NCBI GenBank assembly: GCA_001179505.1
Contig: CDMY01000241.1
Span: forward strand, 87,894 to 151,893
Reading direction: 5' to 3'
DNA length: 64,000 nt
Source: Vitrella brassicaformis CCMP3155
Taxonomy: Eukaryota; Protista; Chromerida
Position numbers and translations under genes: made by a program. Positions 38,791 to 46,713 of the stretch are shown in pieces (position 1 is the stretch's first letter; the number at the start of each line of letters is the position of its first letter). Below the pieces are notes generated by a model. It was not told the DNA's origin, made no database searches, and saw only the letters and a list, made by a program, of their open reading frames with translations.

Positions 38791-41164
38791 ATCTACCAGT
38801 GTGGGAGCCTTCTGGATCGACTCATAGAACAAGATCGCAAGCTGAGCGCCCCATCGGTACACACATACACACATCGCTGCCATTGACATACTACGTGACA
38901 TTTTCCTTGTCGTTTCTGCGTTCATGCAGGCGCACGATGATGGCAGTGCTTCTACGACCTTCAGTGGGCGCCTTCGTCGTGCGGCTGATGACGTCAAGGC
39001 TTCACACGCGTCGCTGTTGGAGCTGACGAACGACATGCTGTCCAGTGCTCAGCAGGTATGTGTCTGACCAAAACAAGACAGCTGACACGTCCCTTGTCCA
39101 CGAGTGTGTGCATGTGTGTGGTGTGCCAGGATGGCCGAGCACCGTCGTACCGGCTCGTCAACCTCAGCGGCAGACAGCCACCCTCCGAGCCACCGGTGCG
39201 CACACACCACTGCACACAGAACTCCATGCAGCGAATCCCACATCTTCACCTGCCCCTTCCCTGCATGTGTGTGGGTATCTGTGCAGGCGGCAGATCGTGT
39301 GTACGGCAACGTGGACGCCAGCGGCCACCTGCTGACCATGCACTCGTTCTGGCAGCTCGCCAAGGCCGCCGCCCCCCAATACGACCGCATAGTATTCGAC
39401 TTCAGATGCCGCGACGAGTGGGAGGCGGTGCCCCCCGCCGCCGCATACGAGATCGGCAAGTGTGCCATCAACCTCAAGATCGTGGTGGTGCGGCACCCCT
39501 CCCACTCCCCTCACTGGTGGATGGTCGGCTGGTCGGCGTTCATCGAGGGGCACTCGCGCGGCGTGGAGGAGAGGAGGAGGACCGGGCAGGGTGGGGGGAT
39601 CGAGGAACTCATCTTCGTCCGCATCGAGGTCCAGGGCGCCCCCCTTCCCCGAACGGCCCCCCACACACCTCCTTCGCCCATCACCCTCCTCCCATCCTTC
39701 ACCCTACTAGCACTCAAGTCCATCAAGGGTGCCGCGGAGGACCACTGTCACCTGTTCGACAGCCGGCGGTGGCGCATGCCGGCTCTCGAGCACTTCAGGG
39801 GGGCTGAGGGGTCGTTTGGGGCGTTCTGCGGCACGTCCGATCGCCTGCAGTCCTTAGATGTTGGCGGCACTCGTGTTGGCGACGTAGCTGGTGTGATCGA
39901 GGGATTCCCCGGCGAGGGGTCGTCCAAGCTCGAGCGTCTGCAGCACATCCGTGGCCTCGGTTTGGCGGGCGGGGATGCGGATGCAGAAAACATCGACAGA
40001 CTTCGGGTGAGGCGCAAAGAGCACAAAGAGAGATACCCGAGACATCATGTCGGTGTCTGTGTCTTACCGCTGTCTTTGTAGGACGCGCTCAAGTCGCGGG
40101 GCTGCTTGAAGCTGCAGCACCTTGGCTTCATTTGCTTATGGGTCCCACCGGTCACCCTGCCCACCCTCCGGGCCATCGAAGGATTCCTCCCTGCCGCAGT
40201 CCCCCCATTCGGCCTTCCCGTGGCCGGGCTGTCGGTCAGCTTTGCGACCGAAGGCGTCCTCAGCTTCGACATGTCGCTGCTTCATCGCATCCCCGCCCCC
40301 TCCCTCCTGATGAAGGCCATGCTGCGGCAGCTCGCCTCAATCGCCACACACGTCGAGTGGGCGCCGGACGTGAGCTTCATGGAGCACCCGACCAGCCTCT
40401 CATGCGAGAAGGCATTCATGGAGAGCATCCGATTCGACAGGGCCTTTCAGCTGACCATCCACCAGAGCAGCCCCACCCTCCCTGCCGGCCACCCGTCCAC
40501 CCCTGACCCACACGCACCCCCATCACATGTGTGGGCGGTCATCGACCATATCGCCCCATCGGCATTTCCGAATGCACTCAGCGAGCTGAGTGTGGGCGGT
40601 CCGTTCGGCTGTGCGGCGGCCGCCCGGCTGCTGACGGCGGCCAAGGTCCGCGTGGCGGCAGAGTCTCGTGTGTTGGCGGATGACGTGGAGGGGTCGGAGG
40701 CCCTGCAAATGATGAAGTCGATGGGCAGCGGGACAGTGCTCGGAATGGTGCAGATAGCGGGCGTGGCGGGGGGGAATGTGGGCGGGCTGGATGAGTGGGC
40801 GAGGGCGAGCGCTCAGGACCAGCTGCCCAGCACCGATTCCCTTGACATCACCCTTCACGACCGTAGCCGAACGAGACAGATGTGACCAGTCTATCCGGAA
40901 ATGAATTAGAATGTCTCTGTCTCCCTTTGTGTGTATCTTACTCAAGAGTTAGCCGAGGCCATTGCGTGGGAGCAGTTGGACACGATGCTGCAGCAGTTTG
41001 TGCGGTCGACGAACAAAGTGGTCATCATGGTCCTGATGCGAGACAGGAAGGAGCTCGTGGCCGCCATCAACAAGGTCACAGCCACGACTCTGGCTGACGG
41101 TGATCGGACGAGCATCGCCATTGACCCGGTCCACACACTCCGTATTTCACGCCGCCGGACGTAA
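38791..41164 (+). CDS. Divergent family 1-related protein, copy C (start upstream, about 38450, not resolved)
   Basis: GT-AG exons including PSYRLVNLSGRQPPSEPP (compare PSYRIKHRSGLPPPDQP in copy A), EWEAVPPAAAYEIGKCAINL...FIEGH (compare LWERMPLETAYKWGQRAIHL...IIEGN) and SRGCLKLQHL. Confidence 0.65.
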
Positions 41165-41851
41165 GCAAGGAGGAAGGCGAGCCGCATGTGTACATGGATG
41201 TGTTTGGGTGTCTGTCTGTCTGTCATGGCCTCAGGTAGCTGCTGCTGTTGGCGCACACAAGAGTGCACCTGTCTATTCATCGATGTGTGTGGGTGGGTGT
41301 GGGTACGTACGAGAAAGACTCAGCTAGGGGTAGAGTGCGTGTGTAGATTTGTCCAATGGATGTGTGTGAATGTGTGTGGTGCGTGCGGACAGCGCGAAAT
41401 TCAACCCTTCAGACGTGGCGGTTGTCATCTCACGGTGTCCACACAGTGCTCTGCCGCGCCATTCACTCAAACGCGACCCACAGACATGCAAAAACGGTCC
41501 TAAAAGGGTCAGAGGCTCTCCCTCCCTCCCTCTATCTGTCTGTCATTTCGTCTGTCTGTCTGTCTGTCTTTGGCATCTCCGCTGATCATGTCAGGCGTTC
41601 CGACGCACACACACACACACACACAGAAACAAACAAGCGGCGACTCGGTCGCGTAGATGGTTGACCGTACGATGCTTCATACACGCATTCATGCGGCCAG
41701 CCATGCAGTGGTCTCGTTCAATTCAGTACTGTACACAGGCCACCACAGCGTGATGCTCTTCTGCGGTCGGTATTCCGTCCCGCACACACACCGGCATCAG
41801 CCGACGACAAGCAGACACTCATCATCACGTCCATCGATCTGTCTACCAGCA

Positions 41852-44758
41852 TCACTTGTAAGGCACGATCACATCTGCTATGTCGGATGAGCAGACGGGG
41901 CACTTCCACGACAGCCGCTGCTGGTTGGGGGGACCCAAGTACTTCTTGAGCTCGTTGGCACAGCCTGATCCATCCAGCCGTATCAGACACAGGTGGAGAG
42001 AGACAGAGGGGGAGGGAGAGAGACATCATGATGGTGTGGTGCGCGCCGCTCTCTCGTGTGTAGGGGGTGACGTGTTCTCACCCACCCTGGCAGACGCACT
42101 GATGTCTGCAGGGGATGAAAACAACCTCCTTGGCCTGATCCACACCCACACACATACACAGAGCGATTGCGTCCACCTCTCTGTGGTTGGCACGGTGATG
42201 TGAGTCGTTGAGTCACCTTGTCCTGCACACACACACATACGCACACATACACGGCCAGCAATAGACGAGTGTTGTGGCTGGCCGACGGACTGACCATGCA
42301 GATGATGCATTTGTCGTCTCCCTCGAGCTTGCTGATGATCGTATCCGTCACCATGGCCACCTCGCCCTCCTTGTCACGCTTCAGCTGCTTCAACTCATCC
42401 ACAGGCAACCCTGCGCACATCACACACACCACACATACAGAGGTGGGTGCACTCTCCATGTGTGAGTGGGTGGGCCGGTGGCTGACCTTCGATGGTCTTT
42501 CTGTCAAGCGGCCTGGAGGGATCCTTCTTGGCCTTCTCGAGCTCCTCCTTCAGCTCCTGTATCTGCTTCTCTAGCCGTCCGCGCTCGTCAGATGCCGCCT
42601 CGCGATCCAGCTCCTGGTTGGCGCTCCTGGTCTCAGACCTGGTGGACAGACGACGGAGAGAACCACACACACACACGCACAATGGATGTGATGTTGTGTG
42701 GGCTCCGTGATGAGTGTGTGTGGTTGGGTGTATACTCACTCGACGAGTGAGTTGACGAGCTGTCTGACGGCCTCGATGAAGCCGTTGAACTCTGCCGTCT
42801 TGGCGCGGCTGCCGGCCTCTGAACACACACACACACACAGGCAGGGATGGGTGTGGCCATTTGGCTGTGACGTGCTTGCTGATGGTTTGCGCACACACGT
42901 TGTTTGATGACGGTAATGAGTTTGTCGAAGTCGTCTGACGTGCCGAAGAACGACGTTGGCGGAGATTGTGAACGGCCCATCTCATAGTCCTGCAGGCAGA
43001 CAGGCAGGCAGACAGGCAGGAAGCGGGCACATGAGATGCTGAAAGAAGACCATTGTGAAAGTGTAAGTGCATTTGTGAGGAGCATGCCTCGAATCTGATC
43101 TCCTCAGGCGACTGCAGACACCGCACACCGCACCAACACATACATGCATGACGCTAACAGCCTCTCACTGTGTGCCCTGGTGTGAGTGCTCCCTCCCTCC
43201 CTCCCTCCCTCATCTCACCTTGACGGCGTATTCCTTCTGTGCGATGATGTGCCTGTGGAACTGGCTCATGGTGGGCGCGGGCGGCTCATGGGGGAAGCGG
43301 AACTGCTCCTCGTACTGCTGGAAAGGAAAGGGGCTGCCCTTCACCACCTCACCATCAAACATCCCACCTTCAGACATAAACATACAACCAACCATCGGAA
43401 CAAAGCAGAGATGGTCCGTTTCGTCCGTGTGTGTGCCTGACTTACCAACATGGACACATTCCGATGCACTTCGCCGGTCGACGCGGCCGAGCAGCGCCGC
43501 CTGCGCCTTGTCGACGGCGCGCTTGCGGATCGCAGCTGCATGCACGAGACGGCATTCATGGACGAAGGCTAAGTGGGAGGATGGTGCTCTAGTTGTCTCA
43601 CCCTGGTCGACTTCGCGTCGGCCGTTGCTGGTGGATGTGGTGAAGACGCTGCTACTCCCGGTGGAAGGACCTGACCGCCACACACACGAGAAGGTGAGAC
43701 GCAGTACTGAGGCTTCTTGTCTGCCTGATTTCATGGGCTACCCATAGAGACAGGCTCCATCGGCCGGTCGGCGTTGGTCAGCACTCGAACCCGCAGATAC
43801 CCTCCTAGCCCCCCACCCATCCCGCCGGCCTCCATCATACCGACGCCACCGCCACTACTGCCGCTATTACCAAAAATCGGCACAGGCGCCCCTTCACCAA
43901 ACAAACCTCCACTCACGCGCAGCGAGCCAAACAGCCCCCCTCCCTGCGAGCCACCCGCTGGAGCAGCGGCCGCTGCAGGGGCGGCACCAAAAATGGATTG
44001 AGATGACGACGCACTGCTGGCCTGTCCGAAATTGGGTGTCGGCGGGCCAGCGGGGAAGGCAGAGGAGTCCGCCGCGCCGCCCGTGGTGCTGCCAGTGGAG
44101 AAGAGACCGCTCCCTCTGCTCGCGAAGATGGGGGTGGTAATGGGGCTTGTGCTGCCGAAGAGACCACCACCACTGGCGTTGGTGTTGGCGAAGATGCTGC
44201 CGGTGCTGCCCGCCTGTGAGCTGGCGACCAGACCACCTGTGCTGCCGAACAGACCCCCACCACCAGAGCTACTGCCGCCAAAGAGACCCCCGCCACTGCT
44301 GGTGCTGCCGAAGAGGCCTCCTGCGTTCGGGCCACTGCTGGCGCTGCTGCTGGTCGTCGCACCGAACAGTCCGGGGAAGGCCGTGGGATTGGTCTGTGCG
44401 GGGACGGGTGGGAAGGGCGGCGCACTCGGCTGAGGGAAGACGGCCGCGGCAGTTTGGCCGAAGACCGGGAGAGCAGACTGAGCCGTGCTGCTAGTTCCCG
44501 ATGCACCGGTCTGGAACAGGCCTGAAACGGATACATCCGACGACGTAACCAGAGATCACCGGACGGAGTGTGGGTGCCTGGTGGGATGGACCAGTGCTCA
44601 CCTCCGAATATTGACGCCGTTGATCCACCAGCCGCCGCAGCAGCGGGTGGAGGGGTTCCAGCGCCGAAGAGTGACTGTGCCGCAGGTGCGCCAAACAGGG
44701 AGCCACTCGTGCCGGCGCCCGAGCTGACACCTGCACCCTCGCTGCGCCGTCCTGACAT
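41852..44758 (-). CDS. GLFG-repeat plus GLEBS (Nup98/Nup116-like) protein with a coiled coil and a C-terminal RING-HC finger
   Basis: ATG at 44758, many GLFG/SLFG/IFG repeats, spliced HRHIIAQKEYAVK-SPEEIRFE-DYEMGR, coiled coil ERGRLEKQIQELKEELEKAKK, and RING CIICM-DK-AKEVVFIPCRHQCVCQ-GCANEL...KCPVC. TGA at 41852-41854. Confidence 0.85.
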
Positions 44759-44883
44759 GACCCTCACGCACTGCAATGACACAGCAGAACACGACGGAAA
44801 CTCAGACAAGTGTGCTGGCTGAGACGGCAGGGCGGAAAAGGAGTTACGTTTCTCTGCTCTGCTGGCTGACGCCTGTCAGTCAC

Positions 44884-45166
44884 TCAGGTTGTGTGAGATG
44901 TCGTCCACTGCGACAGCAGCCAGAGGACAATCAGGAAGCCGAAGATGAAGATGATGGCGGCGAGAGGCGACACCGGGAGACCATGCTCCGCGTACGAGCC
45001 GCCTTCGCTGAACACCTGACCAGCCAGCCATACCAGACACAGAGGCGAATGTTGCAGCAAATCAATGCCTCAATGCAAGCTCTTGCCTCACTTGGAAGCC
45101 AATGCGGCGTTTGACGTTCGGCCTGATGCCGCGAGGATCCTCGTCTTCTCTGTTGTCGTCCGCCAT
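44884..45166 (-). CDS. 68-aa tail-anchored membrane protein, Sec61beta-like
   Basis: Exons 45092-45166 and 44884-45015 with a GT-AG phase-0 intron give MADDNREDEDPRGIRPNVKRRIGFQVFSEGGSYAEHGLPVSPLAAIIFIFGFLIVLWLLSQWTTSHTT. The G-L-x-V-x-P, F, L and W positions match the spacing of the Sec61beta transmembrane motif. Confidence 0.65.
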
Positions 45167-45184
45167 TAGAATTTGCCCCGTGCC

Positions 45185-45240
45185 GCCTAGGGTGCTGCCT
45201 GAAACCGCTGCTGCTTCTAGGGTTTGGGGTTTCAGGGTTT
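45185..45240. promoter_or_regulatory. Telobox-like cluster plus a 30-nt element repeated exactly at 50408-50437
   Basis: GCCTAGGGTGCTGCCTGAAACCGCTGCTGC is followed by CTAGGGTTTGGGGTTTCAGGGTTT, about 20-75 nt upstream of the ATG at 45166. Confidence 0.5.
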
Positions 45241-45458
45241 CACGATCGTGCTGCCAGGCAGCCCTCCGCCAGCGGGCGTGCCACCAGCATGACGGCATAG
45301 CCACTAGTTGTAGTCTTTCCTTCCGCGGCAGATCATTTCACAACCGTGCTTCATCGAACCGTAAGTACCGTTCCCATCCGCTCGCACATGCAGCGAAGGG
45401 CGAACAGCTGATCACATCCACCGCAGCATTCATCGCAACCGATGTTTGTCTGGTGCAG

Positions 45459-46713
45459 GTGAGATCTCGTTTCAGGGCCCGACAGATACAATGTCGGCGG
45501 GGGCGGATGCAGGGCCGCTTGCACAGCTCCAGAGCATCGGCACCATCATTCTCAATGGCAATCCTGCTCAGACCAAAGAAGACGTTGACCGACTGAGGGT
45601 AAGTACAACTACCTCACACACGGCCGATGACCTCACACACAGGTGCTTTCCTCTTCTTGCCTTCAGGGTGTGCTGTGGTCTCGTGGCTGCCGCCGGTCAA
45701 TGACACATCTGACCCTGCTGCTGGACTTCCGCGACATAGACTCGAGTGTCCTTCCCGTGGTGCAGTCCCTGGAGCAGCTGCACGAGGCGTGCTGCCGGCC
45801 AGACGCCCCCTTCATCTTCGAGGAGGACTCGCCCAGCGCGGCCAACGCCAACAGCATGCACCTGAGCTTGTCGCTCTTCTACGGCGATGACTTCCCCCGC
45901 AACCCCTCGGCCCTCTTCAAGCAGACCATCCAGCAGCTGGCACGGCAGGCCAACGAGATCTACTTCGCCATGGCGCAACACGAGATCAACAACACCGTGG
46001 ACAATCCCAGCAAAGCGGCCATCGACGTGGCCTCCAGCCTGTCCTTCGAGCGCGCCGAGAGGGTGACGGTGTGCGTCTTCACCTACCCCCCTCCCCCTCC
46101 CACCACACCCTGCCCCCACCCCGCCATCATCGACCACCTCAGGCCATTCCCAAAGGCCACCCAATTAGACATCACCGGCAGGCTGGCTGCGACTGCGGGC
46201 CGTCTGCTGGCCGCCCGGATGGCGACCCAAGTGGCGAAAGTGACCATCAGCGGATTCCCCACCGGTGAGGCGCTGGGCATCGTGGGCGAGCTGGGTAGCG
46301 AGAGGGTCGTGGAGGAGGTATCGATCCACAGGGGGAGTCCGCGGCAGGTGTCCTTCCCCTTGGCCGCCGACTTGCCGACGATTAGCCAGCTGTGTTTCAG
46401 TGCACATGGTGGGTGAAAAAAGGCAATCAAGACAGGCTCCTTCTTTGGTCTCGTTCGTCCATCGCTGTCGTGTGTGTGTGTGTGTGTGTGTGCAGTGCTG
46501 TCAGGTGATGTCCAGGCCGAGTTCCCGTCCGCACTCTCGGGTCTGTTCCAGCACGTCCCGGGTCTGCAGCGTGTGGCCCTGTCATTCGACAACCACTCCC
46601 CAGCGGCCATCCATTCCGCCTTCCCCGACGGCTCGACGATCGGACATTTCCCCGTGACAGTGGAGGAGCGGTCTGGGTGCCCTGTCGTGATGGTCTCCCG
46701 TGACGCGTCGTAG
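45459..46713 (+). pseudogene. 5'-truncated family 1-related gene or remnant (C-terminal half only)
   Basis: Exons carry LQSIGTI...VDRLR and SRGCRRSMTHL, homologous to the family 1 middle region. The N-terminal half is absent and no in-frame ATG was found in the upstream exon. Confidence 0.5.

Follow-up and report, generated by a model that had tools for sequence, protein, structure and literature searches.

Nup98 and Nup116 are nucleoporins in which a GLEBS motif, embedded within a GLFG domain, binds Rae1, and which hold an autoproteolytic, pore-anchoring Nucleoporin2 (peptidase S59) domain and a Nup96 part. In human Nup98, the glutamates E201 and E202 form conserved salt bridges to Rae1 (PMC3783196). 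The nearest case reported to a GLEBS-bearing RING ligase is TgZNF2 from Toxoplasma gondii, a zinc-finger protein of mRNA export that is not a nucleoporin and whose GLEBS is reported to be active (PMC5785795). Ubiquitin ligases tied to Rae1 or to the pore are known from two other settings, the PHR proteins (Highwire / RPM-1 / MYCBP2), which are RING ligases that bind Rae1 (PMC4806438), and plant HOS1, a RING ligase that forms part of the nuclear pore (PMC12626886). Here we describe a gene of the chromerid Vitrella brassicaformis CCMP3155, lying within 64,000 nucleotides of contig CDMY01000241.1 (forward-strand positions 87,894 to 151,893; this whole stretch is hereafter the window, to which positions refer), whose predicted protein carries four recognizable modules in the order GLFG domain, GLEBS, helix, RING. 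On balance, and judging from these modules, we think it fairly probable that the protein is a modular ubiquitin ligase of RING type, with a copy of the Nup98 N-terminal half as its targeting part.

The protein shares with Nup98/Nup116 a charge-depleted GLFG domain adjoining the GLEBS, both salt-bridge glutamates and a GLEBS of the length found in animals. It differs in that its GLEBS follows the FG domain, whereas that of Nup98 is embedded within it, and in that it ends in a putative coiled coil and a RING, with neither a Nucleoporin2 domain nor a Nup96 part. With TgZNF2 it has in common a GLEBS outside the nucleoporins and the same wider lineage; TgZNF2, however, has a C2H2 finger in place of a RING and no FG domain, and a ligase role is not known to have been proposed for it. 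The PHR proteins and HOS1 offer precedents for the biology proposed below, but are unrelated proteins; PHR proteins use a Rae1-binding domain of their own, HOS1 uses an ELYS-like domain, and they have neither FG repeats nor a Nup98-type GLEBS. Each of the modules in the Vitrella protein is well known, and their combination is without description in the literature searched. In literature searches that paired GLEBS with RING finger, nucleoporin, E3 ligase or Apicomplexa, no paper turned up that describes a RING ligase with a GLEBS, and a search for literature joining Vitrella and Nup98 found none. The initial annotation knew of no described FG-GLEBS-RING protein, and this holds for the literature searched; the pairing of GLEBS and RING by itself also occurs in unnamed environmental proteins, which we discuss below.

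Modules of the protein and the transcripts that join them

The gene runs from 44758 to 41852 on the minus strand of the window, in GC-rich (55-68%), intron-rich, eukaryotic surroundings, and consists of 13 coding exons with consistent phases that encode an open reading frame (ORF) of 624 amino acids (aa). The coordinates given in the initial annotation are exact, with the start codon (ATG) at 44758 and the stop codon (TGA) at 41854-41852. We checked the exon model against contigs of public sequencing runs aligned to window positions 41200-46400. Runs X1, X2 and X6, which come from at least two studies, yield spliced contigs from which all the predicted introns are gone, and run X8 holds the unspliced DNA form of the locus. 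Three transcript contigs retrieved through exact protein look-up, namely L001 (Logan SRR646408), L002 (JGI 3300017297, MMETSP) and L003 (Logan ERR558152), agree with the exon model from end to end, over 2467-2782 identical nucleotides, and the model protein is the same as P0001, an MMETSP ORF of V. brassicaformis CCMP3155 marked 'type:complete'. The earlier caution that two separate genes might lie here is therefore answered, since exons for both GLEBS and RING lie on a single mRNA in the spliced contigs of X1, X2 and X6 as well as in L001-L003. Likewise, an artificial fusion of neighboring FG/GLEBS and RING genes is contradicted by three transcript assemblies that run unbroken from FG to RING. 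The locus is a real, expressed, single gene of V. brassicaformis. Its exons, in the order of transcription, are as follows.

45092-45201, minus strand: first transcribed exon seen, with 5' leader and the start of an upstream ORF; joint 45012/45089 in X1, X2 and X6
44848-45015, minus strand: second leader exon, with the C-terminal hydrophobic part of the upstream ORF and its TGA at 44886-44884; joints 44770/44848 and 45012/45089
44602-44770, minus strand: coding exon 1, which opens with 12 nucleotides (nt) of leader before the main ATG at 44758 and encodes the first SLFG/IFG repeats
43742-44521, minus strand: coding exon 2, which encodes residues ~53-313, most of the GLFG domain plus the first part of the linker; joints 44520/44601 and 43668/43740
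43602-43670, minus strand: coding exon 3, an S/T-rich linker, placed by transcript joints
43446-43535, minus strand: coding exon 4, a charged linker (AIRKRAVDKAQ...); joint 43535/43602
43219-43367, minus strand: coding exon 5, with the N-terminal arm and turn of the predicted GLEBS hairpin (GSPFPF...HRHIIAQKEYAVK), residues 367-415 of P0001
43088-43111, minus strand: coding exon 6, 24 nt encoding SPEEIRFE, with the predicted salt-bridge glutamates E418 and E419; its donor is GC instead of GT
42899-42989, minus strand: coding exon 7, with the end of the GLEBS (DYEMGR), one further FG (SFFG) and the start of the helical region
42740-42818, minus strand: coding exon 8, a helical linker
42487-42638, minus strand: coding exon 9, a charged, heptad-like helix and candidate coiled coil (residues ~462-518)
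42295-42410, minus strand: coding exon 10, with the helix that precedes the RING and with C565-x2-C568, its first zinc pair
42217-42222, minus strand: coding exon 11, a 6-nt micro-exon, GACAAG (Asp-Lys), that completes the CxxCMDK conserved in IAP-type RINGs
42086-42134, minus strand: coding exon 12, with RING ligands C580, H582 and C586 (VVFIPCRHQCVC)
41852-41964, minus strand: coding exon 13, with the last three RING ligands (C589, C609 and C612) and the tail ...VIVPYK, which runs up to the stop TGA at 41854-41852
41402-41851, minus strand: 3' untranslated region (UTR) at its minimum extent; L002 ends at 41402 and L003 at 41425

Both of the very short exons are seen in transcripts. The 24-nt exon at 43111-43088 is required, as the arithmetic of an X2 contig fits only with it and L001-L003 are identical to the model, and spliced contigs of X1, X2 and X6 show the micro-exon as CTTGTC, flanked by 42134 and 42295. 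A donor at 43841 for exon 2 and an acceptor at 43568 for exon 4 are ruled out by the transcript joints, which end exon 2 at 43742 and start exon 4 at 43535. The locus offers clean cases of a 6-nt micro-exon in a RING, of a 24-nt exon holding the key residues of a GLEBS, and of a chromerid mRNA with two ORFs.

Residues 1-270 contain seven GLFG motifs, 14 FG dipeptides and 22 phenylalanine motifs at a spacing of 4-20 residues; 2.6% of the residues are charged, 18.5% are Phe, Ile, Leu, Val or Met, and there are 2.6 GLFG per 100 residues. A comparison of 666 Nup98 FG domains by Schmidt and Görlich gave a median of 2.5% charged residues, and in the Nup98 FG domains of ten species the same five hydrophobic residues make up 13-17%, with 1-4 GLFG per 100 residues in most and none in two (PMC4283134). 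By composition, then, residues 1-270 have the properties of a cohesive, charge-depleted GLFG domain of Nup98 type. The Pfam family Nucleoporin_FG (PF13634) scores 23.7 bits, under its cut-off of 32.2.

The motif that follows matches the Nup98_GLEBS family (PF21240) with 27.9 bits on residues 360-450, at a cut-off of 27. In a sequence search of the PDB with E up to 10, all seven matches are Nup98, and the top five (E = 0.002-0.03) are restricted to the GLEBS-containing N-terminal part of Nup98; four of these five are short peptide chains from crystals with Rae1 (3mmy_B, 4owr_B, 7vpg_B and 7byf_B; E about 0.002). We also aligned the motif with those from environmental Nup98 genes. Residues 376-430 align without a gap to a 57-residue GLEBS of animal type from this set (L056), including its N-terminal G-[ST]-x-x-x-F arm, and E418 and E419, encoded within the 24-nt exon, align with E201 and E202 of human Nup98, so that both glutamates are kept. 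Three exons together encode the GLEBS, which is why exon 5 alone as query found no Nup98 match in Pfam or the PDB, whereas the spliced protein did. Residues ~376-430 are, on this alignment, a full-length GLEBS of Nup98 type. As the key residues and the full length of the motif are kept, we have moderate confidence that it binds Rae1.

The C-terminal 180 residues consist of the candidate coiled coil and the RING and contain no Nup98 anchoring domain: neither the Nucleoporin2 domain nor the Nup96 part has a Pfam match in the whole protein at E up to 1. Since this pore-anchoring autoproteolytic domain is absent, the protein is not a member of the Nup98 family. Residues ~462-518 are 40% charged, coiled-coil families give weak matches to this helix, and an AlphaFold2 model of residues 365-624 made without an alignment (mean predicted local distance difference test, pLDDT, 50.7) shows a single continuous helix at 462-518 with a pLDDT of 56-77, which is of low confidence. 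The helical region at ~445-560 is probably a coiled coil on these grounds.

The RING matches PF13920 (zf-C3HC4_3) with 49.7 bits on residues 562-618 (cut-off 27), and a regular expression for C3HC4 matches residues 565-612, with all eight zinc ligands present. Among solved structures it is nearest to cIAP1 and cIAP2 (E = 1e-7), XIAP, MGRN1, CGRRF1 and MUL1. The likeness to cIAP1 extends nearly residue by residue through CxxCMDK...VVFIPC.H..VC..CA; cIAP1 reads CKVCMDK at the place where the Vitrella micro-exon supplies the DK. With IAP-type ligases in general (cIAP1/2, XIAP and livin) the protein shares a RING at the extreme C-terminus, a helix before it and an aromatic residue near the end. 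It differs from them in having no BIR, CARD or UBA domain, in a 13-residue insertion in the second loop of the RING, and in a Ser where they have an Arg. The protein ends 12 residues past the last Cys in ...VIVPYK, with Tyr at position -2. Aromatic C-terminal tails are typical of dimeric RINGs of the IAP/MDM2/RNF4 type, where they are used in the activation of ubiquitin charged on its conjugating enzyme (E2~Ub), and ...VIVPYK resembles these. Judged by its ligands and matches, the RING is intact, of IAP type and at the extreme C-terminus. The anatomy given in the initial annotation, which had GLFG repeats, GLEBS, coiled coil and a complete C3HC4 RING, is therefore borne out by transcripts and profile matches together.

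GLEBS motifs paired with RING domains in environmental sequences

Close relatives of the Vitrella protein were not recovered. A phmmer search with exon 5 against 1.84 billion representative sequences returned the query itself and one unrelated repeat protein but no ortholog; word-seeded searches of 5.8 billion proteins with residues 365-624, over two length ranges, returned only the query itself; and a search of the ESM Atlas gave no ortholog of the architecture. We then looked for the GLEBS core in metagenomes and metatranscriptomes with a degenerate DNA pattern for E-Y-x3-S-x-E-E-[LIMF]-R-x2-D-Y, which matched at least 120 stretches. Among the matches listed, most of the interpretable ones are ordinary Nup98 genes, with 41 of the 122 lying in ORFs that hold at least 10 FG dipeptides (40-60 in the longest) and 50 more in short, exon-sized ORFs. 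Others place the GLEBS beside different domains:

L012, L051, L085 and L122 (proteins P0004-P0015, unnamed), marine metatranscriptome contigs: proteins of 252-274 aa with GLEBS and RING
L075 3-701, minus strand, and L097 2753-4144, minus strand: overlapping contigs of one gene from a GC-rich marine eukaryote
L110 3692-6436, plus strand: 915-aa ORF with a full GLEBS (71 bits), a few FG motifs, a long low-complexity S/T/N-rich spacer and a C-terminal RING
L016 13100-14224, plus strand: BTB domain together with a GLEBS that scores weakly (16.9 bits)
L034 and L111, two contigs: GLEBS with RNI-type leucine-rich repeats

In the proteins of 252-274 aa, an N/Q/Y-rich head is followed by a GLEBS above the Pfam cut-off (PF21240, 35-41 bits) and, some 20 residues further on, by a C-terminal PF13920 RING (43-44 bits); their AT-rich genes, each of a single exon, are also found on metagenome contigs L125-L129 from Tara Oceans. 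A search of the Atlas with one such marine GLEBS-RING protein found generic RING clusters only. The gene on L075 and L097 encodes ankyrin repeats, a GLEBS (34 bits), a protein kinase domain (166 bits) and a marginal PF13920 match (28 bits) at the C-terminus. Its GLEBS is nearly identical to that of L070 (and also L040), another marine contig, whose Nup98-like ORF holds 56 FG dipeptides, and this near-identity suggests recent copying of the motif.

The environmental proteins with both domains (P0004-P0015, L075/L097 and L110) share with that of Vitrella a Nup98-type GLEBS on the N-terminal side of a C-terminal RING or RING-like domain. They differ from it in having no GLFG domain and no evident coiled coil, with FG dipeptides near the GLEBS in L110 only (four of them), and among the matches listed the Vitrella protein is the only case of GLEBS and RING with a full GLFG domain. 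When the C-terminal half of the Vitrella protein was compared by BLASTP with a marine GLEBS-RING protein, similarity was found in the two domains only, in the same order, with 25% identity over the RING and 58% over 24 residues of the GLEBS; common descent of the whole architecture is thus not shown. The sequences do show a Nup98-type GLEBS repeatedly combined with RING or RING-like domains, and the recurrence of this pairing in unrelated contexts argues that it is useful. In a compost-metagenome contig (L116) we also observed three GLEBS-like units in tandem.

Proposed mechanism and alternative readings

We infer Rae1 binding, localization, ligase activity and substrates from the sequence, and propose the following model. 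The GLEBS hairpin would clamp the top of the Rae1/Gle2 WD40 propeller, as it does in Nup98, and the GLFG domain would allow partitioning into either the FG phase of nuclear pores or another condensate of FG type. Dimerization and recruitment of E2~ubiquitin would fall to the putative coiled coil and to the IAP-like RING, with its aromatic tail. The ligase could then ubiquitinate Rae1 itself, or the bound Rae1, as a WD40 protein, could be a detachable receptor for substrates. In the latter case a RING / coiled coil / WD40 ligase would be assembled in trans and would mark proteins that are bound to Rae1 or close to the pore; COP1, in which RING, coiled coil and WD40 are found in one ligase, is an analogue of such an assembly. 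The suggestion in the initial annotation of a ubiquitin ligase that captures Rae1 or enters the FG phase is consistent with the composition of the FG domain, with both glutamates and with the intact RING. The model makes a sharp prediction, namely that a ubiquitin ligase reaches Rae1, and probably also the pore's FG phase, by means of a borrowed piece of Nup98.

Several observations weigh against this reading. The GLEBS score is borderline (27.9 bits for the fragment and 23.4 bits for the whole protein), and the PF21240 match spans only positions 15-39 of the 39 in the profile. The FG domain is short, at 270 residues, and has 5.2 FG dipeptides per 100 residues against a median of 9 in Nup98 (PMC4283134). 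In the RING, the second loop carries the 13-residue insertion, and a Ser follows the last Cys. An Arg 'linchpin' at this place is a mark of very active RINGs. As no ortholog was found in other species, there is no evidence of conservation for the exact protein, and the position of the main ORF as the second on its mRNA may keep protein levels low.

Among the alternatives, the one that fares best, unlikely as we judge it, is that the FG-like region has nothing to do with pores. The protein would then be a cytoplasmic or nucleoplasmic RING ligase whose sticky low-complexity region drives another condensate, the GLEBS supplying Rae1 or nothing. The marine GLEBS-RING proteins without any FG repeats speak for it, as the pair evidently works without them, whereas a region that has seven GLFG motifs, 2.6% charged residues and a GLEBS beside it bears the specific signature of the Nup98 N-terminus and not that of generic low complexity. 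Distinctly unlikely, in our view, is that the Vitrella Nup98 is split and that this protein is its working FG/GLEBS half, a true pore subunit to which the RING is an add-on; the autoproteolytic anchoring domain might then lie on a separate FG-less protein, with the halves perhaps joined through coiled coils. The FG and GLEBS modules and the putative coiled coil would indeed complement such an anchoring half. Yet a canonical Nup98-96 may well exist elsewhere in the genome, Toxoplasma keeps a Nup98-96 homolog in TgNup302 (PMC5785795), and the FG domain is short, at 270 residues.

GLEBS motifs of Bub1 and BubR1 bind Bub3, a paralogue of Rae1, in the same manner, and the Vitrella motif could by this precedent bind Bub3 rather than Rae1, with the ligase acting at kinetochores or in mitotic control. 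We regard this as very improbable, as matches are limited to PF21240 and Nup98 chains, the Bub1/Mad3-type GLEBS family gave no match in Pfam at E up to 1, and the motif adjoins GLFG repeats as it does in Nup98. Almost no credence is due to a gene-model artefact that merges two genes, or to a real product of 682 aa fused to the membrane-like ORF upstream: the public model CEL95948.1 does join both ORFs, which are in frame across one TGA, but three assemblies run from FG to RING unbroken and none contains the donor that the 682-aa form needs, all using 44848, downstream of the stop, so that this explanation is already largely refuted.

The reading of a ligase with a borrowed Nup98 piece may reach beyond this locus. 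Rae1 is an mRNA-export and mitotic factor, and the findings suggest the GLEBS as a mobile module for recruiting proteins. GLEBS and RING occur together in at least three unrelated architectures, across Vitrella and uncultured marine eukaryotes, which suggests an overlooked general coupling between Rae1 and ubiquitination. Could GLEBS-RING ligases be an unrecognized and recurrently invented class of E3, with Rae1 as a detachable WD40 receptor, to which Vitrella adds a GLFG domain and which might there be half of a split Nup98, with the anchoring half on a separate FG-less protein of the autoprotease domain? Such a scheme, which if true would put a ubiquitin ligase within the pore's permeability barrier, is speculative, and in its entirety we hold it to be rather unlikely.

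The upstream reading frame and the ends of the transcript

The mRNA is dicistronic or carries a long upstream ORF. This upstream ORF comprises 68 codons spread over the two leader exons, from an ATG at 45166 (MADDN...) to the TGA at 44886-44884, and has an acidic/basic head and a hydrophobic tail. It is complete in L001 and L002; L003 begins within it and retains the last 38 codons. From the upstream TGA to the main ATG there are 48 nt, interrupted by a spliced intron of 77 nt, and the two ORFs are in the same frame; frame 2 of L001 accordingly reads ...SHTT and a stop, then 16 codons, then MSGRR. The leader, of 290 nt, has a single further ATG besides that of the upstream ORF. No match to the upstream ORF was found in Pfam, the PDB or homolog searches, and a guess from its shape that it might be Sec61-beta is thus unsupported.

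Given an upstream ORF of 68 codons, ribosomes can reach the ligase ORF only by leaky scanning or reinitiation, or on a shorter transcript. Two reports on green algae concern polycistronic nuclear mRNAs that are reportedly translated by leaky scanning (PMC7896298, PMC11291117), and another reports such mRNAs from Cryptosporidium (PMC11761812). The public annotation (CEL95948.1 / A0A0G4EI72, here P0003; 682 aa, 'RING-type domain-containing protein'; window 41852-45166) joins both ORFs by means of a donor inside the small ORF, after ...FGFLI. No transcript contig uses this donor, and all use 44848, past the upstream stop. The supported product is the 624-aa ORF and the 682-aa annotation wrongly fuses two ORFs, so that our analysis corrects the public gene model.

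The transcript contigs start at 45201 (L001), 45190 (L002) and 45000 (L003). The contigs of all runs break near 45197-45205, close to a high-copy repeat, and 45201 is thus only the apparent 5' end of the transcript. Neighboring annotated genes contain no informative domains. At the other end, L001 continues beyond 41235 (window 40981-41234), and its last 180 nt skip 41161-41234, an intron that is GT-AG on the plus strand. We therefore reject these 180 nt as 3' UTR and attribute this end of L001 to an assembler merge with a convergent plus-strand transcript, whose gene overlaps the 3' UTR or abuts on it. Window positions ~45028-45375 and 42766-42939 show very high summed contig depth with many loose ends, and are rich in (CA)n and other repeats.

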